This document shows positions 5,685 to 60,799 of a DNA stretch of 64,000 nucleotides, in pieces. The position numbers and the translations under genes were made by a program. Numbering within the stretch: position 1 is the first letter of the stretch; the number at the start of each line of letters is the position of its first letter. Below the pieces are notes generated by a model. That model saw only the letters and a list, made by a program, of their open reading frames with translations. It was not told the origin of the DNA and ran no database searches. Source of the stretch: Zootoca vivipara (Eukaryota); contig NC_083278.1 in NCBI RefSeq assembly GCF_963506605.1, forward strand, positions 51,584,001 through 51,648,000, given 5' to 3'.

Positions 5685-7045
5685 GTTGTTGTTGTTTAGT
5701 CGTTTAGTCGTGTCCAACTCTTTGTGACCCCATGGACCAGAGCATGCCAGGCACTCCTGTCTTCCACTGCCTCCCGCAGTTTGGTCAGACTCATGTTCGT
5801 AGCTTTGAGAACACTGTCCAACCATCTTGTCCTCTGTCGTCCCCTTCTCCTTGTGCCCTCCATCTTTCCCAACTTCAGGGTCTTTTCCATGGTGTCTTCT
5901 CTTCTCATGAGGTGGCCAAAGTATTGGAGCCTCAGTTTCAGGATCTGTCCTTCCAGTGAGAACTCAGGGCTGATTTCCTTCAGGATAGATAGGTTTGATC
6001 TTCTTGCAGTCCATGGGACTATCAAGAGTTTCCTCCAGCACCATAATTCAAAAGCATAAATTCTTTGGCGATCAGCCTTCTTTACAGTTCAGCTCTCACT
6101 TCCATACTGGGAAAACCATAGCTTTAACTATATGAACCTTTGTCGGCAACGTGATGTCTCTGAATTTTAAGATGCTGTCTAGGTTTGTCATTGCTTTTCT
6201 CTCAAGAAGCAGGCGTCTTTTGATTTTGTGACTGCTGTCAGCATCTGCAGTGATCAAGGAGCCCAAGAAAGTAAAATCTCTCACTGCCTCTATTTCTTCC
6301 CCTTCTACTTGCCAGGAGGTGATGGGACCAGTGGCCATGATCTTGGTTTTTTTGGTTTTTTTGGTTTTTTTGATGTTGAGCTTCAGACCATATTTTGCAC
6401 TCTCCTCTTTCACCCTCATTAAAAGGTTCTTTAATTCCTCCTCACTTTCTGCCATCAAGGTTGTGTCATCTGCATATCTGAGGTTGTTGATATTTCTTCC
6501 GGCAATCTTAATTCCAGTTTGGGATTCATCCAGTCCAGCCTTTCACATGATGTAATCTGCGTATAAGTTAAATAAGCAGGGAGACAATATACAGCCTTGC
6601 CGTACTCCTGTCCCAATTTTGAACCAATCAGTTGTTCCATATCCAGTTCTAACTGTAACTTCTTGTCCCACATAGAGATTTCTCAGGAGACAGATCTCCT
6701 TCATGGATCACTGCCTTGTCGTGGTGAGGGGGTTTGAATAACTCAGAGAAGCTATGACAGACATTCCCAAACTTCGGCCCTCCAGATGTTTTGGACTACA
6801 ATTCCCATCTTCCCCGGCCACTGGTCCTAGGGAGTTAGCTAGGGATCATGGGAGTTGTAGGCCAAAACATCTGGAGGGCCGCAGTTTGGGGATGCCTGAG
6901 CTATAAGCTATCCCGTGCAGGGCCACCCAAGACGGACAAGTCATAGTGAAGAGTTTTGACCAAATGTGATCCACCTGGAACAGGAACTGGCAAGCCACTC
7001 CAGTATCCCTGCCAAGAAAACTCCATGGACAAAGACAACAGGCAT
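5685..7045 (-). mobile_element. BovB (RTE) LINE 3' part with inverted 5' segment
   Basis: RT C-terminus (MAESEEELKNLLMRVKEES, ILKLRLQYFGHLMRR, HGVTKSWTRL) and (CAA)n tail on minus. BovB 5'-like sequence on plus at about 6700-7045. Flanking ataatatataat repeats. Confidence 0.85.
6758..6898. mobile_element. ~135-bp hAT-type MITE nested in the BovB 5' segment
   Basis: TIRs; flanks agctatga/agctataa. Confidence 0.8.
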
Positions 7046-11299: not shown

Positions 11300-20204
<8,905 letters not shown>

Positions 20205-23169: not shown

Positions 23170-24034
23170 ACAGGAGAAGTAGAGGTGTGAAGAAATACTC
23201 TACTTGGGTCCCGTTTCAGACTCAGAAGGGGAGAGATCTTCTGGAAAGAGAAGAATCCCAAACCGAAGGTGTGGTGATCCCCTGGGTCTGTTATACTGCG
23301 AGAGGAGCTTCAAGAGAGTGATTTATAGAAGTTTGGGAAACTTAAAGTAGTACCTTGTTTAAGAACCGAAGTATTAAGCTGTGACACCTATGCAAATAAG
23401 TTTAAGAAACTGAAGTTAATAAACTGAAAAGCAGCTGCGCGTTTAACCATCCCATTTAGAAGCCTATAACGTTCACTGAATTTAATATAAATAATTTCCC
23501 TAAGTACCCAAGTACCATAAAGTACCCTAAGTACAAAAAACTAACTACTAGTTGTAGGGAGGGCATGTGAATCCATTCTTTGCTGTTAAATGTTGGCTTC
23601 CTGGAATCTTTTTTCAATCACACATATCCAAATTATGCAATGCAGCTTTCCAACAGAAAGGGACCATGTTTATCATATTATACAAATAATATGATATAAT
23701 GCTTATTTTAGCCAAATATCCTACAGAAAGTGTTATATTAAAAAAAAAAACCATTGTGTGTGTATTAAACATGTTTGTCTATAAATTTGTATGTCAAGAG
23801 AAATCCACACTAAAATGTTGTCACTAAAAATTTCCATGAACTTTTTTCTTCCAAAAATCACAGACTGGTGCAGAAATATGGTGAACCAAAAAGAACAGTG
23901 AGAAAGTGAGAGGAAACAAAAGAGAGAAGATTCACTCATCCCTATTCTAAAGACTTTGAAGAAGAAGACGACGATGGCTCAACCTGTACTAAATCATATT
24001 ATGGCAGTTTATAAATACCAGAGTCTGGCTAAAG

Positions 24035-24170
24035 CAGGCATCCCCAAACTTCGGCCCTCCAGATGTTTTGGACTACAATCCCCATCATCCCTGACCACTG
24101 GTCCTGTTAGCTAGGGATCCTGGGAGTTGTAGGCCAAAACATCTGGAGGGCCGCAGTTTGGGGATGCCTG
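24035..24170. mobile_element. ~135-bp hAT-type MITE
   Basis: Terminal inverted repeats and 8-bp TSD ggctaaag. Confidence 0.9.
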
Positions 24171-25894
24171 GGCTAAAGTGTGAGATCCAATGAATGTGTG
24201 TGCTGCTAAACTCTTGGAAGAGTACAAAGAACCATTTTTATTCATGTATTTTTATAAGCTGTAAATGATGGAATCTGTGCTTTTTCATGTGATCACCTTT
24301 GTTGAGTGAACTACAGGGGGGAGAATGTATGTCAGACAATGCAAGGAATACACTCTGGGTGTACTTGTCTCTTATCAAACTTTGCTGCCTTGAACTGGCA
24401 TACAGTATGAAGGTACAGCTGTTTTTCTATAGGCTGGCAGGGCCTTGAATGTTAATTAATCATTGCCATTCAGTAGGAATCAAATGCTTTCTTCATCTAA
24501 AATATTTGTGAGGCAATTTTTATTGGAGTTCAAGTAAGTTTTCCCACAGAACCACTTGTTCAAATCCACTCAGGTCAACGTTTTGGGGCCCCTGCAACAT
24601 TTATCATCCTTGGGGCTTGGGGTCAGACGAGTTCCTCTGGAATCAGACTTTGTCACTCCAATTACCTAACCATTCTTCAGGTGCCAAAGGTCCTCTGAAT
24701 GTTTACCTGAAGTAAATCAAACTGTATTCATGCAGACTTATGCTCTTAATAAATTCGTTTATGAATGAAGCTTTTAAAGTGATTTTTCAGTGCAATAAAA
24801 CACAAAACAGGGTTAGTGCATATTGTGGACTATGTGCGTCACAAGTTCCTCATCTCCAGTGTTGTTGTTTTTTCCTCGGGGGACACAGGGGTACGTATAC
24901 CCCTAAATAGATATATATTTTTAATAGAAAAAAAGCACTGCTCATCTCAAAGTATGGACCACACATCATTCTTTCAGACCAAGGACTCAGCTACGTTAGT
25001 AAAAAAACAGCACTTTGGGTGCATTATAAATATGCAACACCAGATGGCTCTGGAGAACAAAAACAATTCTTTGCTATTTCACATCACTTTCCCCCCTTTT
25101 GCTATAATGATTTAATTTCTGATTTATTTATAGCGTCGTCCCCACCCCCACCCCACCCTGTGTGTAGATCCATCTCAAGTGAAATTGTGGAAAACTTCTA
25201 GTCAAAATGACTTGAAACACTCACCAACATGTGTTCCAACAATCACAGCTCTCCACCATTTATTTGCAACACATGGATTGGCAGATGCTATAACACGTGA
25301 CACCCTGTTCTAGAGAAGGACCTTAGCAAACAACTCTATGCATAATATTTCTTGCTTGGTTCCAACACAGCTCTAGATGGACTCCTGAAAAATTCTCAAG
25401 ATCTGGACAATTGGTATACACATGCGAGACAGAGAAAAAGTTCCTAGAAATATTCTCAAGTATAGTGTCCAATTTAGCCATGCTCCAAGAAGCCCACCTA
25501 AGCCATTTACTCAGTAAAGAGATAGGGCTGCTCATCCAACCTTATCCCACTGCTTTCTCCTGGGAAAACCTGACCTTTACTGCTGAATTGGAGCAGACAT
25601 CCATTGGATTTTCCATGGATTAACACTGGCTCTGATTCAGGGCTAAAAAAAACAGGTTTTCCCAGGAACTGTATATTATCAACATCTCATTGTGGAAGAA
25701 AGAAGGTGCCAATGTAAATGGGAAAGACATTTAATAAGCATATTCAACATATTTTAGAATTAAGAGCATATTGTGATGAACAAAGAATGTTTTAAGTACG
25801 GTAGGTTTTTTTTTATCCTCTCCATTGACAAAAAGTATGGTTCAGATGAGTACCACTCTGTATACAATTTTCTTCTTTCAAGCCGGAAGGAGAC

Positions 25895-34479
<8,585 letters not shown>

Positions 34480-43789: not shown

Positions 43790-44900
43790 CTCGCCCGCCC
43801 CTCCTGGCGAAGCAGCTAAGGTGGAGGGAGCGCCGCGTTGGGGACGCGAAGTGCAGCTGCGCGGATGGCGCGCGCCTTCCCCGCCGCCGCCGCCGCCCGA
43901 TCCTGCCCTGCCTATTCGCGGGAGGGGCCTCGTGGAGGAGGAGGGCCTTTAAGCCGGGCGCCCCAACCGCCCAGGCCGGCACTGCAGCTCTGACAACCGC
44001 CGTCGCAGTTCCAGCTCCGCTGCGGCCTGCACGCTCCTCATCCGCCTGGCAACGCTTCGCCTCGCCGCCATGGCCAAGCCTTTGTCGGGGCAGGTGTGCG
44101 TGGTGACGGGCGCCTCTCGGGGCATCGGAAAGGGCATTGCGCTGCAGCTGTCCGGGGCGGGCGCCACCGTGTACATCACGGCTCGGCACCGCGAGGCGCT
44201 GGAGGCGGCGGCGGCGGAGGTGCGGGCCCGCGGAGGGAAGTGCGTGCCGGTGGTGTGCGACTCGTCCCGGGAGGAAGACGTGGTGGCGCTGTTCGAGCGC
44301 GTCCGGCAGGAGCAGGCGGGCCGCCTGGACGTGCTGGTCAACAACGCCTTCTCCGGGGTGGGCGCCATCGTGGAGGAGATCGGGCTGCCCTTCTGGGAGA
44401 GCTCGACGGCCCTGTGGGACCAGATCAACAACGCGGGCCTGCGGGGCCACTACATCTGCACCGTCTACGCCGCCCGGCTGATGGTGCCCGCCGGGAGGGG
44501 GCTCGTCGTTACCATCTCGTCGCCCGGAGGGCTGCGCTACATGTTCGACGTGCCCTACGGGATCGGCAAGGCCGCCTGCGACCGCCTGGCCGCCGACTGC
44601 GCCGTCGAGCTGCGCCCCTTCGGCGTGGCCTCGGTGGCGCTGTGGCCGGGCTTCGTGCGCACCGAGAGCCTGGCGAAGGAAGTGGAGAACAGGACGGGAC
44701 CCATGATAGCCAGGCTGAAGGAGAAGATGGCCTCCATGGGAGAGACCCCCGAAGTGAGCGGGAAGTGCGTGGTGAGCCTGGCGTCGGACCCGCGCGTCAT
44801 GCGCCACAGCGGGAAGGTGCTCCTCAACCCGGATCTCGCCCGCCTTTACGGCTTCAAGGATGTGGACGGCAGGGAAGTCTTCAACTACCTCTCGGTGCGG
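43790..44900 (+). promoter_or_regulatory. CpG island over the promoter and most of the DHRS1-like ORF
   Basis: Abrupt rise in GC and CpG from about 43790; GC boxes, CCG run, TTTAAG about 120 nt upstream of the ATG. Confidence 0.75.
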
Positions 44901-45059
44901 GACATCCTCACGGAGCTGATGCCCAAACTGTCCGGTTTATTCCGCCTCATACCTCGGTTCATCACCATCCCCAAATGGGCTCTAGCTCTCTATTCTAGCA
45001 AGTTTTCTGTTTACCCACCCATCCAGCCGCCTTACCTTAAAACAAAAAAGCAAGCCTAA
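44070..45059 (+). CDS. DHRS1: Intronless DHRS1-like short-chain dehydrogenase/reductase, 329 aa (probable retrogene)
   Basis: Uninterrupted ORF with strong Kozak (gccgccATGG). Motifs TGASRGIG, LDVLVNNA, ISS, YGIGK. DHRS1-typical stretches CVPVVCDSS, GLRGHY, KAACDRLAADCA, SGKCVVSLASDP, PKWALALYSSKF. Confidence 0.93.
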   Translation: MAKPLSGQVCVVTGASRGIGKGIALQLSGAGATVYITARHREALEAAAAEVRARGGKCVPVVCDSSREEDVVALFERVRQEQAGRLDVLVNNAFSGVGAIVEEIGLPFWESSTALWDQINNAGLRGHYICTVYAARLMVPAGRGLVVTISSPGGLRYMFDVPYGIGKAACDRLAADCAVELRPFGVASVALWPGFVRTESLAKEVENRTGPMIARLKEKMASMGETPEVSGKCVVSLASDPRVMRHSGKVLLNPDLARLYGFKDVDGREVFNYLSVRDILTELMPKLSGLFRLIPRFITIPKWALALYSSKFSVYPPIQPPYLKTKKQA

Positions 45060-45966: not shown

Positions 45967-46923
45967 GACAAGCATGAGCACATCATCAGAGTTCAAGGGC
46001 ATATTCCAGCCATGCAAATACAAAGTTTCCACACACTTTTGTCATACACTTACTCCACCTCAGTTCTACTCTTTGCTTTTCATAGGAAAGGGGCTAAGGT
46101 GTATCAGCATTTTTATGCCTCAAACTTTTGAGGGTCTGCTGTGTTACTTGGAGAGATGAAGGAACAGAGAGGTGCGTTTGTTGGGGAAACTGGTCCCCAA
46201 GAACACTTTTTGCCCCTGCAAAGGTCCCCCTATTAAGTGCCATTGAAACCAGTATGACTTTCATTTTAAGCTCCGTTACTACACACTTCCATTACATGCA
46301 CCCTAAAGGGCCCATTAGGAAAATAAAAATAAAAGCAACTTCAGGTAGAAGTCATTTTAATAGTGGTGAGAAACAAAACCTTCCCCACTCACCTTTCTTT
46401 ATCTAGATTGTGTGTGCCCTCTTCTCTCCCCCACCCCTTGTTTTTCGGGTGGCGATAGGTTGCAACAATAAAAGTAAGTTACATCTAATCTCTCCAAACT
46501 ACTTTTGAAAATGATAAAAGCTTCACTAACTAGTAGACATGACACAGATGCTGTGGATTTTACTCTCCCTCTATCTCTGATTGATGCTGAGAAACTGCTT
46601 CCAATGAAAGCCTGTATACATCCAGGTTTGGTTTTGTAATAACTGCAATAGCAAAAAATGTTATGACATTCGTATCCTATCTGGAGAACCAATACTGATA
46701 AAACGAGTTAATATAAATCTCCTTTCATAATCCCCCTTGCTTGGCCTGCCAAGGCACTGACAAACTGTCAAGTTTGGGGAAGAAAGCAAGTGACTAAAAC
46801 TATCCCTTACCAACTGCCAAGCTGGTTAATGCTTCACAATGATGCTATATGTACCCTACAGAGGTGGCTTTGGCCAGTTTTTGAACATTTGCTTCCAGCG
46901 TTTTGCTGTGCAACACTCTATAC

Positions 46924-47059
46924 CAGACATCCCCAAACTGCGGCCCTCCAGATGTTTTGGCCTACAACTCCCATGATCCCTAGCTAGCAGGGCCAATGGT
47001 CAGGGAAGATGGGAATTGTAGTCCAAAACATCTGGAGGGCCGAAGTTTGGGGGTGCCTG
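46924..47059. mobile_element. ~135-bp hAT-type MITE
   Basis: TIRs, TSD ctctatac. Confidence 0.9.
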
Positions 47060-47896
47060 CTCTATACCAAACACTGTTGGAAGTTGTGTAATTCATGCCT
47101 GACATCATCACCTGCTTAGAAACTCCTTTGTATTAGCACTTACAACAGCAGCTGACTTGGAAAATGCAGAGGGATGGTGACAAGCAAATTTAAGCCAGCC
47201 TTGGGCCTTCTAGCACTGCCATGCTGTTGCTGTCTCCCTCCAAGAGAAGGGAGAGAGGGCTTGCATGTTGATCAGTGTCCATCAAAGAACAAATCTGGTA
47301 AATTTAAGTACAGACAGCTGGGATACAAAAGGCTCAAGCGGTACAGCCTAAATGCTTATAGGCACATGTGTTAACCAGCATGTGCAAACAATAAAACATT
47401 TTAAGACACAGATGGGAAGTCATGGCCCTCCAGCTGTCATCCCATCAACTTCAGCCAGCATGACCAGTGATTTAGGGAAGTTGTCGTTCATTAACATCTT
47501 GATAATCACAGGTTTCTTCTTCCTGCTCCAAAGGTGACTAAAGAGGCATTACTTAATCTCCTGTAGATTATCCCCATTTAATTATGGCTTTATTACAGCT
47601 TAAACCTGCAGTTGACAAGATGTTCTCAAGTGTTTACTTGAATTAGAATTAGAGATGCAATCCTGAACAATTCCACCCAGACCAGTAATACAAGTTCTAC
47701 CCAGTCTTGAGTGGGATGCCAGATTATGTTGCAATGATTTTAATAGAATGTCTATGTCAGACATATGCAACTTGGTTAAACATTCCAAAGAAAATCAATC
47801 ACCCATTTCCACCACCCTTCTGAGTGATCCCCCCTCCCCATCCCCACCCCTCCCCACCCCTTCTCTACATAAGTGCCTGGAAACTTCCATTTCACT

Positions 47897-48723: not shown

Positions 48724-50935
48724 TCAAGAAATCCGCTGAGCCACGAAGCGCTGAGAAGCCTGCCTACGAGTCTTAAGAGGAAGACAAACAAGAGTTAGCG
48801 TTGCCACTTTTACTTACACCACAGTAGATCACTAAGATATTTAATCAGATGGGCTCTTATCTGTAATACTCACAACTTTTTCCTCTGCTGACAGTACACC
48901 GTCTATGGCCACGAGCTGATACTGTTTATGTTTTAAGCTGCCCACATATCTTCGAAGCAATCTGAGACTGTTCCCATCTATGCCTTTTAAGAGTTTTTGC
49001 ATCTCTTGTGAGGGGCAACCTGGATCGAACATCAGTAGGCACAGAGTTTTGTTCTTCCTTTCTTCTATTCCAATAATAGTACGACTATGACCTTTTTTTA
49101 AAAAAAAAACACACACACCAAAACACACCCATCAAGTATACATTTCTGCTGAACACACAGTCTACAAACCCTTAAAGCAAAATCCCAAATTCTGCTGTAC
49201 AGAATTGCAATATATAACTTAATGCTTACATAGATAATTGTAATTGTTATAAAAACAAACTACTCGTATAAATGTCTTTTTCAGGTAAGTTTTATTTTAA
49301 AAATCTACCATTTTCTCTCTGACTTTCAAAGAAGGTTACAAGAAAGGAGATTCCAACTAAACACCAGAAAGTTCTTTCTGGTGTTTAGTTGGAATCTCCT
49401 TTCTTGTAATTTGAATCCATTCGTTCAGGCTAGCAGGGATCAGCAAACTTTTTCAGCAGGGGGCCAGTCAACAGTCCCTCAGACCTTGTGGGGGGCCAGA
49501 CTGTTTTTTTTGGGGGGGGGATGAACGAATTCCTTTGCCCCACAAATAAACCAGAGATGCATTTTAAATAAATGACACATTCTACTCATGTAAAAACATG
49601 CTGATTCCCGGCCCATCCGAGGACTGGATTTAGAAGGCGATTGGGCCGGATCTGGCTCCGGGCCTACCCATGGGCTACAGCCTCCAGAGCAGGAGAAAAC
49701 AAACTTGCTCCATCCTCCATGTGGCAGCCCTTTAAATATTTGAAGCTGGCTATCATATCTCCTTTCAGTCTACCCTTATCCGGGCTAAACATTAACTCCC
49801 TCAACCGTTCCTCATAAGGCTTGGTTTCCAGACTCCTGATCATCTTGGGTACCCCCTGCACACATTCCAGCTTGTAAATATCCTCCTTAAATTGTGGTAT
49901 CCAGAACTGGTCACTGTACTCCTGATGTGGTCTGACCAAGGCAGAATAGAGCACTACTATGACTTCCCTTGATTGGGACACTATAATTTTGTTGATACAG
50001 CATAGAATAGAATTTGCTTTCCCCACCCCCCACTACATCACACTGTTGACTCATGTTAAGCTTGTGGTCTACAATTACAATCTTTTTTGTAAACTACTCT
50101 GAGGTGTGGTTTTTGTTTTTACAACTGAGCAGTGCATAAATTTTATGAAATAAATAATACAATTATATGTGAGAATTAAAGTTAAGAAGACATTCCACTG
50201 CTCTTCCAGGAAGCATAATTCATGCAACAAAAAACTGGACATGGGGACATCAGTAATACATGAGTAACACAGCTTCACGTTTAGAAAAGAGAGAAGTGGA
50301 AAGTTTCGCTGACCTTGGTGCTGAAGGTATATTGGTGGCTTGGGAGTACACACAACCTTTGCACTGTTCTCCTTGTCTGCCGAGTAATAGTTGAAAACCC
50401 ACTCCAACAAACGAGGATGTGTTCCTGCAGGGCCTGTTGGCTGGTGAAAATCAATGACCTGACACCTATAAGAAAGTTTCAATGAAGCCTTTATAAACTG
50501 TTAGTTTACAACAGGCATCCCCAAACTTCAGCCCTCCAGATGTTTTGGACTACAATTCCTATCTTTCCTGACCACTGGTCCTGTTAGCTAGGGATCATGG
50601 GAGTTGTAGGCCAAAACATCTGGAGGGCTGCAGTTTGGGGATTCCTGGTTTACAATGTCAGATAGCATCTTTTGTTTAGTGCATTAGTCACCAAGTTCTA
50701 CCATTGTTATAAATATTTAGCCCCAGCTGGAAGAACAATGGTCACATTTGTGAGTTTGTAGTAGCACATCTTAACTTCAAGTACACAGCTCCCCCTAGTG
50801 TGAGAATGATCTTTTACTTGATACTTTAAAAAAACCCTTCCTGCAATGTTAATCTGGGTTGCTTTCTTCTTCTTTTTACTACCTAATTGTTACCTGCCCT
50901 GATTTGAAACACTAATGAATGGGATATATGTTTTA

Positions 50936-50970
<35 letters not shown>

Positions 50971-53900
50971 ATATAGAGCTTACACCTTTTCTTGGTATGA
51001 AACTCAAGCCATTGAAATGAATGCATGCTACAGCAAGCAATAACTTTGCACCATTTATACTTGGAAGAACTTTGGAAGTAGCAATCTTCTTTTAAAAAGA
51101 GAGTTGCAAAGAAAGATGTAAGGAGGAAGGTCCTAGGCAACTGATTTACCAATTGCCAGCACAATTTTTCCCTTAAGTATTTCATGTTCTTATTCTCCTG
51201 GAAATGCCATCTCTATATAGGACCAGTTCGAACTTGAATTTCTGTGATATTCACATAAAATCACTCTCATAATTGGTGTCATGTGCTCAGAACTAAAACC
51301 TTTTTACTTCCTTTAATAGGCAGCACTTACTTAATCCTGAGAGAAGTTAAGAGTGAATAAATTTCACATGCTCCTATCCATGCCTTAGTTCCATGTAATC
51401 TGCTGTTGAAGTGAGAAGCTCCTTGTGGGTCAAAGCCTTCTTTCCAAGCATCTTCAATCAATGACTGAATTTTTGGAATGCATGGAATTGATGAATTATC
51501 TAAACAACAACAATGGGACAACATTCAAGTTGCAACTATGAAAAGGCAAAACCAAAGTTACGATAGATTTCTAAGTGTCCCAAAGTGGGACAGCCTTTAC
51601 TGTTGGGGAATTACTTCCTCTTGTGTGACAAAAAAGATTTCCAGCAAAAAATGACATCAGTGGAAAGGACTTGAGCCCAAGTAAGACCTAAGAAAGTTAT
51701 GATCTGGACAGGAAAAGGTTCATATTCTGCAGGCTCATTCTCAATCTATAAAATTGAAAAAACTGTCTTGTATCTACCGATACAATTTTTTAACCCATAT
51801 GATGCAGATATTGTAATATACGTCAGCATAGGAACACATTTTTAGCAAGCGCTCAGGCTGGCAAATGTGCCACTGGCAGCACAACTCCATGCAAAAATAC
51901 CCACCTTTCAAGCACTCTTCATAGGTACTGTTTCTCAAGAGGGAAGAAAGCAGCATTTGGAAGTTTCTATAACCGCAGCCCCAACCTCTGTCTCCTAAAG
52001 AACAATGGAAGTGATCTACTCCTGTAGAAAGCCATACACGCTTTATGTCTTTACATTCATTCTGGTAGTACTGGCACAGTACCTCAGTAATTCCTGATTT
52101 TAAAAAGGGGAGACAGGGAGAGAAAGAGACTTAAGTTTATGCAAGACTATTTACTGATGATACCTCAACAACAGTCACACAATTTGCAAGATGCAACCAG
52201 TATGAAAAAAGTAGTAATAATCACTGCCATATTCTACATAACTATACAAAGAGCAGGGAATAAGTACTGTAGTGAATAGTTTAACATGCTGACAGAAGAC
52301 ATGGCTCAAAGCCTGTTCCTCAGCTATAGATTTACTATACTACCCCAGAGTCGGTCACGACTGGACCCAATGGTCAGGGGTCCCTTTACCTTTACCTTTA
52401 TAGGGACCCAGGTGGCGCTGTGGTTAAACCACTGAGCCTAGGGCTTGCTGATCAGAAGGTCGGCGGTTCGAATCCCTGTGACGGGGTGAGCTCCCGTTGC
52501 TCTGTCTCAGCTCCTGCCCACCTAGCAGTTCGAAAGCACGTCAAAATGCAAGTAGATAAATAGGAACCGCTACAGCGGGAAGGTAAACGGCGTTTCCATG
52601 TGCTGCTCTGATTTGCCAGAAGCGGCTTTGTCATGCTGGCCACATGACCTGGAAGCTATACGCTGGCTCCCTCGGTCAATAATGCGAGATGAGCACGCAA
52701 CCCCAGAGTCGGTCACGACTGGACCTAACGGTCAGGGGTCCCTTTACCTTTACCTTTATTAGGCAAGTTGTCTGAGGCCTTATGGTGAATGGAGAGAGAC
52801 TACGGCACATGCAACTAAGAGTGTAAAGTAAGTGACACACAGCACGAGTGAATTTAATGATTATCTCAATTTTGAAGCTAAACCAATGGTTAAAAGGGGG
52901 GAAAATCTGGCAAAAACCACAAGAGTGGCAAGAACAACCGCCTGAATCCAAGAGTAAACATATAATATTGGACACCTGTGATCACCACTGTGCCCTCAGA
53001 CAAGGAAGTTGCAAGTTTGAAGAGCTGTCAAGGCAAACAGCCAGTCACCACCACTGTACAGCTTTATTTAAGCAGAATGTTTCCTTAATGAAGGTGTCAA
53101 ATCATTACAGGAGACTCAGTGTAATATATTAAGATACTGCGAACCAAACAGAAACAAGACAGCATTTGGTAATAATTACTGAGAAAGCTTTATGAAATCA
53201 TTCACCCTTAGCTAGATAGCAAGCCTACCATTTGCACCAGAGAACTGCAGTATGTTTCCTGTTACTATTTACGAAGGTTGGCAAAAACCATGACAACTGC
53301 CAGTTCTCTACTTAGAAATTTGTCATGGTATTTAGAAAAACATTTAGACAATTTATAACCTATTTTTGAATTGTGACTTTAAATCTACCTGCGCACCATT
53401 ACCTTTAATATGGATTGTAGGAATTGCCATCTCCTGTCTAAAGGCCCATACTCTTATTTCTCTGCAGGCAGAAAAAAATTATTTTGCAATCTGCAGCACA
53501 CTTAATGAACAATGGCTTTTGGCAAAATGATTTTTAGACACCTCAGTCAGACCTTTGAAGAAACTCACACATTTTTAATTACTCACCCGAAGTCTTTGTC
53601 TTTCCATCATCAATACCAAAAGCCAGAGATTCCATCATGTCAGCTTTTCTCCTGTGATAGTCAGATGGGGTCATTCTCCCCAAAGCCACTTCCTTTTCCA
53701 TATTTTTAAGTGACTGCTGCTTATATCCTCCAGAGCCATCCAAGCCATATTGCCTCTGTTAAGGATATATCATACTTTTAAGCCTTTAATCAATAAAAAG
53801 TCTTAGCAGTTCCTGGAGAAAGAAGAATTGTTAGTGCATGCAATCCTGCTTCAACCTTGCAGAGAGGAGAGAATGCAAGAGAACCATGGAAGTTGATTCA

Positions 53901-56900
53901 GAACACTAAGCTGCCCATTTAAGAGTTAAGCGTAACCTTTGTAGTAAGTAACTATAACCAGGATACCCTTTTTCAATGGTATGATGTATTTATTTATGTA
54001 TGTATTTTTCAATGTCATTGGGGACCTTTTAGAGAACAAGTGACTAATAAACTTAATAAATAAATTATATATATATACTCTCTCTCTTTATGGTGTGTGT
54101 GTGTGTGTCTGTGTGTGTGTAGAAATAAGAATAGATATTACAATTTGTACTGCTTCTGAACTAGGGTAGTACAGCTTGAAAAACCTAGGCATGAGATTCC
54201 ATGATAATTAATAAGAAACAGCCAATTATCTACAGAGTCATTCTTTGTGATGAATTCTGAGAAGAGAAATTACTGTACTCACATTTCTGCTTGTAACCTC
54301 TGAACTCTGGAAGTCTCTACACACTTGTCTCTATGGTTTTCCTTTTAAAGTTTGGGAACCTCTGACAGAGTTTATAAAATGCATCCTGACCAAAGGCATT
54401 AGGCCAGGCATCCCCAAACCTGGCCCTCCAGATGTTTTGGGACTACAACTCCCATCCCTAGCTAACACTGGTCAGGGGGGATGGGAATTGTAGTCCCAAA
54501 ACATCTGGAGGGCAGAGTTTGGGGGTGCCTGCATTAGGCTCTCTGCTCAACCAACTGCTACCAAGAGACACTTAACATGAACATTAATTCTTTGTGCACA
54601 AAATAAACACATAAATGTATCACACATTTACAAAACACTCCATATATTTACAAGCTATACCGAAGTACATTGCAACTAGATCACAGATACCACACCTGTA
54701 CCGTGTTTCTCATATTATAAGTCATGTCTTATATTAATTTTTTCTTCAAAAAAACACGACATGGCTTATTTTTGAGGGATGTCTTATTTTTTAATAAAGT
54801 GCACGCGGGCGCTGTTTGCCGGGCTTGTCAAGCCCAGCAAGGAGCGCCCGCCGATCTTCGGTGACAGGCGGGGATGGGGGGAGAGCGGAGAACGATCTCC
54901 GCTTCTCCCCCACCCCCGCCTGTCACACAGCACAGGGCCGAAGATCGGCGGGCGCTGTTTGCCGGGCTTGTCAAGCCCAGCAAACAGCGCCCGCCGATCT
55001 TTGGTGACAGGCGGGGGTGGGGGGAGAGCGGAGCACGATCTCCGCTTCCCCCCCACCCCCCCTGTCACACAGGACAGGTCCGAAGATCGGCGGGCGCTGT
55101 TTGCCGGGCTTGTCAAGCCCAGCAAGGAGCGCCCGCCGATCTTTGGTGACAGGCGGGGGTGGGGGGAGAGCGGAGAACGATCTCCGCTTCCCCCCCACCC
55201 CCGCCTGTCACACAGGACAGGTCCGAAGATCGGCGGGCGCTGTTTGCCGGGCTTGTCAAGCCCAGCAAACAGCGCCCGCCGATCTTCGGTGACAGGCGGG
55301 GGTGGGCGGAGAGCGGAGAACGATCTCCGCTTCTCCCCCACCCCCGCCTGTCACACAGCACAGGGCCGAAGATCGGCGGGCGCTGTTTGCCGGGCTTGTC
55401 AAGCCCAGCAAGGAGCGCCCGCCGATCTTTGGTGACAGGTGGGGGTGGGGGGAGAGCGGAGAACGATCTCCGCTTCCCCCCCCACCCCCGCCTGTCACAC
55501 AGGACAGGTCCGAAGGTCGGCGGGCGCTGTTTGCCGGGCTTGTCAAGCCCAGCAAGGAGCGCCCGCCGATCTTTGGTGACAGGCGGGGGTGGGGGGAGAG
55601 CGGAGAACGATCTCCGCTTCCCCCCCACCCCCGCCTGTCACACAGGACAGGTCCGAAGATCGGCAGGCGCTGTTTGCCGGGCTTGTCAAGCCCAGCAAAC
55701 AGCGCCCGCCGATCTTCGGTGACAGGCGGGGGTGGGCGGAGAGCGGAGAACGATCTCCGCTTCCCCCCCACCCCCGCCTGTCACACAGCACAGGTCGGCG
55801 GGCGCTGTTTGCCGGGCTTGTCAAGCCCAGCTAGGAGCGCCCGCCGATCTTTGGTGACAGGCGGGGGTGGGGGGAGAGCGGAGAACGATCTCCGCTTCCC
55901 CCCCACCCCCGCCTGTCACACAGGACAGGTCCGAAGATCGGCGGGCGCTGTTTGCCGGGCTTGTCAAGCCCAGCAAGGAGCGCCCGCCGATCTTTGGTGA
56001 CAGGCGGGGGTGGGGGGAGAGCGGAGAACGATCTCCGCTTCCCCCCCCACCCCCGCCTGTCACACAGGACAGGTCCGAAGATCGGCGGGCGCTGTTTGCC
56101 GGGCTTGTCAAGCCCAGCAAGGAGCGCCCGCCGATCTTTGGTGACAGGCGGGGGTGGGGGGAGAGCGGAGAACGATCTCCGCTTCCCCCCCACCCCCGCC
56201 TGTCACACAGGACAGGTCCGAAGATCGGCGGGCGCTGTTTGCCGGGCTTGTCAAGCCCAGCAAGGAGCGCCCGCCGATCTTTGGTGACAGGCGGGGGTGG
56301 GGGGAGAGCGGAGAACGATCTCCGCTTCTCGCCCACCCCCGCCTGTCACACAGCACAGGGCCGAAGATCGGCGGGCGCTGTTTGCCGGGCTTGTCAAGCC
56401 CAGCTAGGAGCGCCCGCCGATCTTCGGTGACAGGCGGGGGTGGGCGGAGAGCAGAGAACGATCTCCGCTTCCCCCCCCACCCCCGCCTGTCACACAGCAC
56501 AGGTCGGCGGGTGCTGTTTGCCGGGCTTGTCAAGCCCAGCAAGGAGCGCCCGCCGATCTTTGGTGACAGGCGGGGGTGGGCGGAGAGCGGAGAACGATCT
56601 CCGCTTCTCCCCCACCCCCGCCTGTCACACAGCACAGGTCGGCGGGCGCTGTTTGCCGGGCTTGTCAAGCCCAGCAAGGAGCGCCCGCCGATCTTTGGTG
56701 ACAGGCGGGGGTGGGGGGAGAGCGGAGAACGATCTCCGCTTCTCGCCCACCCCCGCCTGTCACACAGCACAGGGCCGAAGATCGGCGGGCGCTGTTTGCC
56801 GGGCTTGTCAAGCCCAGCTAGGAGCGCCCGCCGATCTTCGGTGACAGGCGGGGGTGGGCGGAGAGCAGAGAACGATCTCCGCTTCCCCCCCCACCCCCAC

Positions 56901-59900
56901 CTGTCACACAGGACAGGTCCGAAGATCGGCGGGCGCTGTTTGCCGGGCTTGTCAAGCCCAGCAAACAGTGCCCGCCGATCTTTGGTGACAGGCGGGGGTG
57001 GGGGGAGAGCGGAGAACGATCTCCGCTTCTCCCCCACCCCCGCCTGTCACACAGCACAGGTCGGCGGGTGCTGTTTGCCGGGCTTGTCAAGCCCAGCAAG
57101 GAGCGCCCGCCGATCTTTGGTGACAGGCGGGGGTGGGCGGAGAGCGGAGAACGATCTCCGCTTCTCCCCCACCCCCGCCTGTCACACAGCACAGGTCGGC
57201 GGGCGCTGTTTGCCGGGCTTGTCAAGCCCAGCAAGGAGCGCCCGCCGATCTTTGGTGACAGGCGGGGGTGGGGGGAGAGCGGAGAACGATCTCCGCTTCT
57301 CGCCCACCCCCGCCTGTCACACAGCACAGGGCCGAAGATCGGCGGGCGCTGTTTGCCGGGCTTGTCAAGCCCAGCTAGGAGCGCCCGCCGATCTTCGGTG
57401 ACAGGCGGGGGTGGGCGGAGAGCAGAGAACGATCTCCGCTTCCCCCCCCACCCCCACCTGTCACACAGGACAGGTCCGAAGATCGGCGGGCGCTGTTTGC
57501 CGGGCTTGTCAAGCCCAGCAAACAGTGCCCGCCGATCTTTGGTGACAGGCGGGGGTGGGGGGAGAGCGGAGAACGATCTCCGCTTCCCCCCCACCCCCGC
57601 CTGTCACACAGGACAGGTCCGAAGATCGGCGGGCGCTGTTTGCCGGGCTTGTCAAGCCCAGCAAACAGCGCCCGCCGATCTTTGGTGACAGGCGGGGGTG
57701 GGGGGAGAGCGGAGAACGATCTCCGCTTCCCCCCCCCACCCCCGCCTGTCACACAGGACAGGTCCGAAGATCGGCGGGCGCTGTTTGCCGGGCTTGTCAA
57801 GCCCAGCAAGGAGCGCCCGCCGATCTTTGGTGACAGGCGGGGGTGGGGGGAGAGCGGAGAACGATCTCCGCTTCCCCCCACCCCTGCCTGTCACACAGCA
57901 CAGGTCCGAAGATCGGCGGGCGCTGTTTGCCGGGCTTGTCAAGCCCAGCAAGGAGCGCCCTCCGATCTTCGGCTCTGTCCCCCGATGCGCGACGGCTCGG
58001 GGAAGCAGGCAGGGAGCTCCTGCTGGGTCCCGCGCCTTCGCCTCTCGCTCGGTCGGGGCTACACGACATGGCTTATTTTCGGGGTATGTCTTATTTTTCA
58101 CCAACCCTTAGAAATCCTGTCATGGCTTATTTTTTGGGGATGCCTTAAAATATGAGAAACACGGTAGCTTTTGGAAATCTTCTCTTTCTTGTTTTGCTGC
58201 TGCTGCTCTTCTTTGCCTGTCTTCCTCATTCTGGAGATGCTGTGCCAATTCTAGGTCAGTCAAGTTTCTTTCTACTGTTATGCAATATTATATAAAATAA
58301 AAGTCTAATGAATATTTCGAAGCTACAGCTACATAACAATTGTGGTTATGTTATACATTACGTTTGCCACAGAAGACCTGCTATATTTGATGCTGTTGAA
58401 TACTTCTGAAAATTCCAGGTTTTTATCAATAACCTGTATGTTTTAAATTTGCAACACAATCCTATGTTCATTTACTGAGAAGCTAAGTCCCATTGTGCTT
58501 ATATTGGGCTGACCTCTAGCAAAGTGTGTACAGAATTCCAACTTCAATTACCTACATTACTAGGCAGAATGTATTATTTAATACCATTCATAGTCACCTA
58601 GGTCACAGATTTAAACCCAGCTTCTCACTTGCAGTTCAGATACAATGATACATACAAATTGGTTAAACAAATTAATATGAATGCTCTATTTAGCTGTAAA
58701 TGAACAAAATATATGTCTGTCTAACATTGCTTTTTGTTTCATTTCCTCTACACAGCATATCTGTAATGCCTTGCTCCACACACACCCTGAGCCCACAAAT
58801 GCATAGTAGCTAATGCTCTGGAGATTTTGCTCATTGCAGCCCGTCAGTCTGCTTAGCTAAGGACCCAGCATTTTTGAGAAGCAAGGACCAATAAGTTAGT
58901 TCCTTGGTAGAGCAATTTATTTTCATAAGATGAAAGGTAAATTGTATTGTTTGCTCAGGGAGAGGAAATATTGATAATTTGGGAACTGGTCAAGTTTCAG
59001 AGTCCACCAAAATGGGCTTAGTGGGTAATCCTCTCAATGAAATAAAAACACTATTGTAGAGTCGGGGCCTGGATCTGTGCCTATGGTGACTAACCAGTCC
59101 TTGGTTCCCAGTACCAAAACCATGAGAAATACCTCACTTGTGCCCAAAATAGATATTTCTTTTAAGGCAGCATTAACTCATTACATTTGATTGAAGGCCA
59201 CTGATTCGGCTTTTAAGAAGTTGCTTATGCTTGTATTCAGATTTAACTGTGCTATGTTAAAAAAACAAAAATATGTGATTTGTTTTTTAATCGACTCCTC
59301 AAATGTCTTCTTTAATTCATTTTTTATCCACCCAGGGCACAGATATATGCTATTTAGGTGCCTCTACTGATGCTATGGGAACCCAGGTGGCGCTGTGGTT
59401 AAACCACTGAGCCTAGGGCTTGCTGATCAGAAGGTCAGCGGTTCGAATCCCTGTGACAGGGTGAGCTCCTGTTGCTTGGTCCCAGCTCCTGCCAACCTAG
59501 CAGTTCAAAAGCACGTCAAAATGCAAGTAGATAAATAGGAACCGCTACAGCGGGAAGGGAAACGGCGTTTCCATGTGCTGCTCTGGTTTGCCAGAAGCGG
59601 CTTTGTCATGCTGGCCACATGACCTGGAAGCTATACGCCGGCTCCCTCGGCCAATAATGCGAGATGAGCGCGCAACCCCAGAGTCGGTCACGACTGGACC
59701 TAATGGTCAGGGGTCCCTTTACCTTTACTGATGCTATCTCTAGCATTAGAGGAAAGAGAGATACAAAACAAACTTGCTGCCAGTTCTGAAAGTGTTGTTA
59801 TTGCTACACTGCATTGTTTTCTACTTTTTTTACGATATGCTAACATGATATATGAAGTTCCAAGTCATATGATTTCATGTTACCTTGCAAGAAAAGCATA

Positions 59901-60799
59901 TATTAGTGAGGATACCAGCTTCTCCTGAATCAAACATTACAACATCTTTAGTCAATACACAAAATATGTCTTTCCTATTTTGGAATCTTCCCCTTACCTT
60001 CTAAAAAGGTGCATTCTTCCAAGTGCAAATCAACATGTTCCTGCAGAATTTGGTAATCAGTACAAACAAGGTGACACATTGGGCATTCATACAGCTCCTG
60101 GCCATTTTCTGCATTAAAGCAAAGTATTCAGAGTAAATTATGAGGTCAGTGCATATTCTTCTGTTGAAAAGAAACGCTTGCTTGCTAACCTAGAAGGCAG
60201 CTCCAAGTTTGGGGGAGTCCCTTGGTAGTGCCTGCTCATGAGTGCTAGATGGCTTGGAGCTGCCGGTGTCTTAAAATTGTAACTCTGTGAGGAATAAACT
60301 TCAATACTCAGACCTGAGGGAAGACTGTTTTTAGTGTGCTTTGAAGATATTGCGCATGGGCAAAGGAAAAACAAGAGCACAGTATATATTAATGAAGAGT
60401 TCGGAAATGGAGGGCCAAGCTCCTTTTGCCCCTCACCCCACATTCGCCCACCATGCTCTGGTGCTGCCTATGCCTGCGCTTCAGGGGAGCCGGAGAGAAA
60501 CGGCGGGTCCTGCTGCCCTATATACTATATAACCGCCTGACGTTTAAACAGACAGACCCATATTCCGACCAGAGACGGTTCCCACTAGCGGGCGACTCGC
60601 ACGTGTGAATGTGCGGTCGCAGGTGTCTCTCGACACTCCGCACGCAAATGATTCATTCTCAAGCCAGACAGCCCTGAAATGCGAAGTGACATCCCTCCAG
60701 GTCTCACTCACCGCGGGCGGGAGAAGGCGGCGGTGCGCGGGCGCCAGCGGACAGGGCCCCCTGCAGAAGCCCCTGCTGGGCTTTGCCGGAGAACTCCAT
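48724..60799 (-). CDS. ZUP1: ZUP1/ZUFSP K63-specific deubiquitinase (418 aa if the transposon is removed); the MIU exon is split by a transposon
   Basis: Exons: 60799-60712 (inferred first exon); 60108-59998 (CPMC..H...H finger); 58274-58165 plus 54698-54696 (DLELAQHLQNEE...FQKL/Q); 53755-53587 (RQYGLDGSGGYKQQ); 52093-51905 (GWGCGYRNFQML, catalytic Cys); 51499-51331; 50465-50314 (PPIYLQHQG); 49091-48874 (GHSRTIIGIEE...FDPG); 48771-48724 (TRRQASQRFVAQRIS*). All GT-AG and phase-compatible, total 1257 nt. Confidence 0.92.
49336..49409. repeat. Perfect 36-bp inverted repeat with a 2-nt spacer
   Basis: ttacaagaaaggagattccaactaaacaccagaaag-tt-reverse complement. Confidence 0.95.
49374..50070 (-). 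mobile_element. CR1 LINE 3' fragment, interrupted by a hAT-like MITE (~49434-49675)
   Basis: KANSILCCI...LYSALVRPH.EY..QFW.P...RLKGDMIASFKYLKG is typical of the CR1 RT C-terminus. Confidence 0.8.
50512..50647. mobile_element. ~135-bp hAT-type MITE
   Basis: TIRs, TSD gtttacaa. Confidence 0.9.
52342..52758 (+). mobile_element. Sauria SINE (52403-52758) preceded by an extra 3'-tail copy
   Basis: GGGACCCAGGTGGCGCTGTGG head, (ACCTTT)n tail; tail sequence repeated at 52342-52400. Confidence 0.9.
54405..54531. mobile_element. ~130-bp hAT-type MITE
   Basis: TIRs, TSD cattaggc. Confidence 0.88.
54701..58164. mobile_element. Non-autonomous Tc1/mariner (Tigger/pogo-like) element, 3464 bp, inserted in a ZUP1 exon
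   Basis: TIR CCGTGTTTCTCATATT(A/T)TAAG at both ends; TA at 54699-54700 and 58165-58166; subterminal catggcttatttt repeats; no transposase. Confidence 0.92.
54807..57972. repeat. GC-rich minisatellite, ~143-bp unit (134-bp variant), about 22 copies
   Basis: Near-identical tandem units, each made of two hairpins. Confidence 0.95.
59377..59725 (+). mobile_element. Sauria SINE
   Basis: Full length, 12-bp TSD tactgatgctat. Confidence 0.9.

Follow-up and report, generated by a model that had tools for sequence, protein, structure and literature searches.

Transposon insertions that silence a gene from within a coding exon are classical, as with Tc1 in unc-22 of C. elegans or the Ac/Ds-like element in SBEI of pea, and recent insertions of cut-and-paste DNA transposons are uncommon in amniotes. 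In such nulls a cut-and-paste element and its target site duplication (TSD) lie in an exon, a premature stop follows and the allele is polymorphic. A comparable arrangement is found in a stretch of 64,000 nucleotides from the lizard Zootoca vivipara (NC_083278.1, positions 51,584,001 to 51,648,000 of the forward strand; "the window", with positions counted from its first letter), where a 3,464-bp element that appears to be young and polymorphic interrupts exon 3 of ZUP1 (ZUFSP) and is predicted to abolish its product. The classical exonic nulls have phenotypes or carrier genotypes, whereas the ZUP1 insertion is known from sequence alone.

Small transposons with tandem-repeat cores have been described in the clam Donax trunculus (DTC84; PMC3879986) and in Drosophila virilis (Tetris; PMC4079207). 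As in these, short terminal inverted repeats (TIRs) flank tandem repeats of varying number in the ZUP1 element, an organization that links mobile and satellite DNA. Compared by structure, not by sequence, the present element differs in its lizard host, in its far longer array (22 units, 3.2 kb), in a size above that usual for MITEs (miniature inverted-repeat transposable elements) and in its TSD, TA. Tandem-repeat transposons and exonic null insertions are both already known kinds; the interest of this locus lies in the amniote host, in its position within a functionally mapped helix of ZUP1 and in the polymorphism.

The closest described protein is human ZUFSP/ZUP1 (PMC5896202; PDB 6ei1 and 6fge), with which the lizard gene product shares a UBZ finger, MIU, ZHA and a C78-like catalytic domain with its motifs. 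Residues F260, L263, Y267 and L269 of the human ZHA contact the distal ubiquitin, Y267A and L269A abolish activity, and the catalytic domain comprises residues 294-578 (PMC5896202). The human protein has 578 aa and four zinc fingers, in contrast to about 421 aa and one finger in lacertids; their layout equals that of ZNF4-MIU-Cat, the minimal K63-active human construct (PMC5896202). ZUP1 of lacertids and other squamates is short, at about 380-421 aa, and is made up of a single zinc finger (UBZ), MIU, ZHA and the catalytic domain.

The identity of the host gene as the ZUP1/ZUFSP deubiquitinase, which an earlier note on this DNA had proposed, is supported by its exons, motifs and helices. Nine coding exons on the minus strand, all in the window, run from 60712-60799 down to about 48727, and their best high-scoring segment pairs (HSPs) with lacertid proteins in tblastn are collinear. 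The coding part of exon 1 (MEFSGKAQQG...SPAR; tblastn and translation) lies at 60712-60799, and exon 2, with the single C2H2/UBZ zinc finger, at 59998-60108 (translation; RNA junction 59998 to 58274). Exon 3 starts behind an aacag acceptor at 58274, and its first 110 nt (58165-58274), which translate as (V)ERNLTDLELAQHLQNEEDRQRRAAAAKQEREDFQKL and encode the MIU and the ZHA helix as far as its middle, end ...GAT TTC CAA AAG CTA at 58165. Exon 4 (RQYGLDGSGGYKQQ...KTKTSG; 53587-53755), placed by its 6ei1_A match and splice sites, carries the rest of the ZHA helix and onward, and exons 5-9 (48727-52097), placed by tblastn with lacertid ZUP1 and by their motifs, encode an intact catalytic domain. 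The exons were compared singly, not as a joined model; the best HSP per exon is mostly 85-100% identical to Podarcis/Lacerta, with lower values where an HSP spans two exons, and the whole ZUP1 of the window is identical to no compared lacertid protein. The motifs of the catalytic Cys, His and Asp (GWGCGYRNFQ, GHSRTIIGIE and FDPG) are intact in the exon translations, and relatives carry PF07910. The MIU and ZHA, reading DLELAQHLQNEEDR...EDFQKL, then Q, then RQYGLD, align to residues 2-89 of 6ei1_A. With eight further exons and every motif present, the statement of the earlier note that the remainder of the gene is intact also holds.

The inserted element, a putative TA-targeting, non-autonomous DNA transposon, occupies 54701-58164 in minus orientation, with its ends, TIRs and TSD read directly from the sequence. 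On the minus strand it starts at 58164 as CCGTGTTTCTCATATT... and ends at 54701 as ...AATATGAGAAACACGG, and it is followed by TA (54700-54699), CAG (54698-54696) and gt (54695-54694). One TSD copy (58165-58166) supplies the TA of the Leu codon CTA; the other lies at 54699-54700. End-to-end alignment places the exon-proximal TIR, CCGTGTTTCTCATATTTTAAGGCAT, at 58139-58164 (minus strand) and the donor-proximal TIR at 54701-54726 (plus strand); over about 25 bp the first 16 of 16 bases are identical, and 23 of 25 overall. The 16-mer occurs in the window only at the two element ends (0.03 expected), and no second copy of the element is present there; a TIR-like match at 23664, which is without element structure, was rejected as chance.

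Between the TIRs, a tandem array at 54805-57969 (about 3.2 kb) constitutes the cargo, in which Tandem Repeats Finder (TRF) counts 22.4 copies of a unit of 143 bp, with 94% matches. The unit has 68% GC and in DNA folding gives two hairpins (-66.8 kcal/mol, z -14.5); the element as a whole has 66% GC vs 39-40% in its flanks. Without the array, a backbone of about 300 bp is left. No transposase open reading frame (ORF) is present in the element, the long ORFs of which, in the ORF list, are translated repeat. For the 47-aa junction ORF no relatives were found in the protein collection, from which such short ORFs are evidently absent. The TSD, the TIRs and the exon arithmetic given below all agree with the earlier claim of a DNA transposon in a ZUP1 coding exon, 3 nt before the donor; what had been called a 3.46-kb DNA transposon is thus confirmed as an insertion, corrected to 3,464 bp and, lacking a transposase, to a non-autonomous element.

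Under the same species label, a search gave three raw RNA runs and DNA contig sets of several studies; the samples compared here are two of the RNA runs (X21 and X22) and two DNA contig sets (X2 and X7), the latter from different studies. In both DNA sets the exon-proximal TIR is identical to high-depth family contigs. Contigs of the element end run to the TA and then stop, at a depth of 388.9 vs about 5 in X7 and of 4,202.7 vs 64-105 in X2. Such contig depths, at about 40-80 times the single-copy level, correspond to some 40-80 copies. A TA TSD, TIRs and multiple dispersed copies, as judged by contig depth, are thus all found, and the TA duplication together with the inverted repeats suggests placement in the Tc1/mariner-pogo kind. 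The element shares with tandem-repeat MITEs the TIRs around a repeat core, but at 3,464 bp it is not of miniature size (less than about 800 bp). Its 136 terminal nt (58031-58166) are identical to the majority family contigs, which fits a young copy, as the earlier note had judged from its looks. The family contigs at the element end divide about half and half between T and G at 58089, and about 30% have T>A at 58134; these are likely transposon subfamily variants.

Whether such an element breaks a protein or merely lies in an intron depends on the position of the donor of exon 3. Exon 3 matches residues 2-32 of human ZUFSP chain 6ei1_A, up to FQKL, and exon 4 matches residues 34-89 from RQYGLD (E 3.5e-24). 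Since the first match ends at 32 and the second resumes at 34, exactly one residue is unaccounted for. Orthologues were gathered with exon 4 as the query against protein representatives, by two homologue searches and by a cluster look-up; among them are Gekko, Sphaerodactylus, Tiliqua, tuatara, Podarcis lilfordi, P. raffonei, P. muralis and Lacerta agilis. In all of the approximately 100 motif-bearing vertebrate ZUP1 proteins a single residue, Q except in two, separates F-x-K-L from (R/K)-Q-(Y/F/I)-G-L-D. The exon 3 peptide is 100% identical to those of P. raffonei, P. muralis and L. agilis and 97% identical to that of P. lilfordi, and the four lacertids keep the one Q. This one-residue gap in the orthologues argues that the CAG behind the element (54696-54698, minus strand; human Q264), as also placed by the 6ei1_A matches, is coding, and that the native exon ended CTA CAG/gtgtgg, with its donor GT probably at 54694-54695.

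Without the element exon 3 would have 110 + 3 = 113 nt, with phase 1 in and phase 0 out, and would join exon 4 at its acceptor, aacag/AGG (53756/53755); no other arrangement agrees with both this acceptor and the orthologue proteins. A Gln derived instead from the CAG just 5' of exon 4 was rejected, as AA rather than AG precedes that CAG. According to sequence and orthologues, then, the element lies within the exon, 3 nt ahead of the putative donor, and not in an intron. The restoration of the exon (FQKLQ, 113 nt) on removal of the element and one TA, and the location in the MIU/ZHA region, had both been stated in the earlier note, and the comparison with related lizards that it had proposed speaks against an intronic placement. 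In human numbering the element falls between L263 and Q264 and splits the ubiquitin-binding ZHA helix in its middle.

The filled allele is predicted to be null, by way of a truncated protein or of nonsense-mediated decay. Read-through from exon 3 adds PCFSYFKASPKNKP, 14 codons, and stops at a TGA at 58120-58122 (minus strand). Exon 3 contains no GT; GTs in the element at offsets 2 and 4 give the -1 and +1 frames, and the sole in-frame donor-like site before the stop is AAG/GCATCC, a weak GC donor at offset 21. Skipping of the 113-nt exon shifts the frame, and use of the native donor retains the whole element, with its stop, in the mRNA. The prediction follows from these points together, because no usable in-frame donor is available, skipping shifts the frame and read-through stops. 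A product ending in the element would be devoid of Y267, L269 and the entire catalytic domain, and would keep only half of the ZHA helix. Both the 14-codon read-through and the frameshift on skipping had been put forward before, and the loss-of-function reading drawn from them is upheld by the analysis of stop, frame and donors.

RNA and DNA of other samples were aligned over 58000-60150, which takes in exons 2 and 3 with the intron between them, together with 165 nt of the element. The RNA junction 58274 to 59998 (GT..AG, minus strand) is supported by 53 and 37 reads in the two runs. Gene-strand RNA depth is 55 and 37 in 58216-58287, 39.5 and 31 in the bin composed of 51 nt of exon and 21 nt of element, and further into the element 6.4 and 4.5, then 1.3 and 0.1. 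The scarce element reads come from both strands, as other copies would give. Expression of ZUP1 thus includes exon 3, and RNA depth ends at the boundary of exon and element with no read-through, a pattern most simply explained by empty alleles. Of the RNA check that had been suggested, the junction of exons 2 and 3 proved to be used; that of exons 3 and 4 lies outside the mapped region. Exon 2 has two missense single-nucleotide polymorphisms, D to E at 60029 (with E the Podarcis and Lacerta state) and C to S at 60013. At both, X21 is homozygous for the alternative, X22 is about 50:50, X7 has the alternative and X2 the reference. Such balance in the RNA of X22 speaks against decay of the reference-like allele there.

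In both DNA sets, contigs leave the reference exactly at the insertion site. An X2 contig (record 2), at a depth of 63.6, which is the local single-copy level, aligns with 0 mismatches to 58164-59404 at its own positions 194-1434, and its 193 first letters continue past the insertion point with no fit to the element; its other end lies 24 nt inside a short interspersed nuclear element (SINE) at 59381. An X7 contig (record 10) aligns to 58164-58462 and runs on for another 195 letters. At an empty site the one extra base, 58164, should align as well, because G precedes TA on the plus strand in both forms. If the site is empty, the overhangs would end at about 54505 and 54503, 32-40 nt inside a multi-copy palindromic repeat (54405-54537/45), so that their length fits an empty site well, with ...AAGCTA joined to CAGGTGTGG as the predicted junction. 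From the position and length of the overhangs we infer that these contigs represent the empty allele. The X2 flank is identical to the reference for about 1.7 kb yet lacks the element, which points to a very recent insertion on that haplotype. Together with normal splicing in X21 and X22, these contigs favor the option of a recent, perhaps segregating, allele that the earlier note had offered.

The reading that best accounts for these observations, to which we assign a probability of roughly 0.75, is that of a young transposon, a predicted ZUP1 null and an insertion polymorphism. A non-autonomous cut-and-paste transposon, probably of the Tc1/mariner-pogo kind and with a 143-bp double-hairpin minisatellite as its cargo, would have jumped into a TA within exon 3; in the filled allele the exon would run into the element, through 14 foreign codons to the stop, and other animals of the species would have an empty site and ZUP1 mRNA that is spliced normally. 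The insertion is then most likely a rare or private polymorphism. That the family is still transposing, with this copy a very recent germline jump that left a ZUP1 null on a haplotype otherwise identical to the empty one, is a tentative extension, put somewhat below an even chance. Several points weigh against this account. The empty site is deduced from the position and length of the 193- and 195-nt overhangs, not from their letters; contigs show presence and not absence, so that X2 and X7 could be heterozygous; and the RNA loose end at 58165 is obscured by the very high-copy SINE in the same stretch. The RNA mapping moreover took in exon 3 without exon 4, and the two element junctions have no independent read support from the likely source sample, X1.

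This last point bears on the suspicion of an assembly artefact, in which the element was misplaced and no real chromosome has it in ZUP1. No contig bridging exon and element is found among the longest pieces listed for X2 and X7, and a body made up of a 3.2-kb tandem array is hard to assemble; a misjoin, on the other hand, would not give a perfect TA duplication and two complete TIR ends, nor an exon that is exactly restored by taking out the element and one TA, and an error in the length of the array would leave the insertion itself unaffected. An artefact is accordingly judged very unlikely. Even less credence is given to an insertion that is common or fixed, with ZUP1 kept by a cryptic donor at the element edge or by removal of the element from the RNA. 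The end of RNA depth at the boundary would look alike if a donor lay within a few bases of 58165, but the GTs at offsets 2 and 4 are out of frame, the only in-frame candidate is the weak GC site at offset 21, exact removal of the element and one TA would proceed without GT-AG borders, and two DNA samples have contigs that depart from the reference at the site. The rescue by unusual splicing that the earlier note had allowed for is thus disfavored; there is no GT in the exon, and empty alleles are the simplest explanation of the RNA.

An insertion that is real and confined to the sequenced animal, as a somatic or heterozygous private event absent from the population, is possible if rather unlikely. 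As far as visible, the element is absent from ZUP1 in two other DNA and two RNA samples, and the approximately 1.7 kb of identity in the X2 flank points to a very recent event. Nothing stands directly against such an event, which is a special case of the polymorphic transposon insertion and differs from it only in allele frequency.

If the family is still transposing and this copy is a very recent germline jump, the locus would be a rare instance of cut-and-paste transposition under way in an amniote, and a natural knockout of a deubiquitinase that serves genome stability. An exonic insertion that is polymorphic, on a flank identical to that of the empty allele, argues for very recent movement of this lizard family, and a natural ZUP1 null, interrupted within the helix by which the distal ubiquitin is held, could be followed in the population. 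For users of the assembly, the broken ZUP1 of the reference is a warning, since it is probably atypical of the species and may be modelled wrongly by annotation pipelines.

Elsewhere in the window, TACCGTA occurs 6 times vs 1.54 expected (4386, 25797, 26749, 33383, 33729 and 41962), a count reached in 1 of 100 shuffles. Elements with CCG...CGG ends may have left these sites as excision scars, which the count supports weakly; some are perhaps not scars, because a sulfotransferase-like reading frame (33677-33907) contains at least one of them. A search for TACCGGTA scars found 0 in the same stretch. The palindromic repeat in which the overhangs would end is about 140 bp long, matches itself in reverse and has at least 7 copies in the window (54405-54537, 1669-1817, 6744-6898, 19862-19996, 24029-24176, 46923-47060 and 50512-50648); it is probably a small inverted-repeat transposon family. 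The very high-copy SINE-like repeat at 59381-59728, with a related copy near 52450-52762, has a DNA word depth of 10^6-10^7, where single-copy sequence has about 64, and draws many RNA reads on both strands. Sulfotransferase-like exons lie on the minus strand at about 31.5-34.5 kb, and an intact, intronless 329-aa short-chain dehydrogenase ORF, DHRS1-like, lies on the plus strand at 44070-45059, in a GC-rich island.

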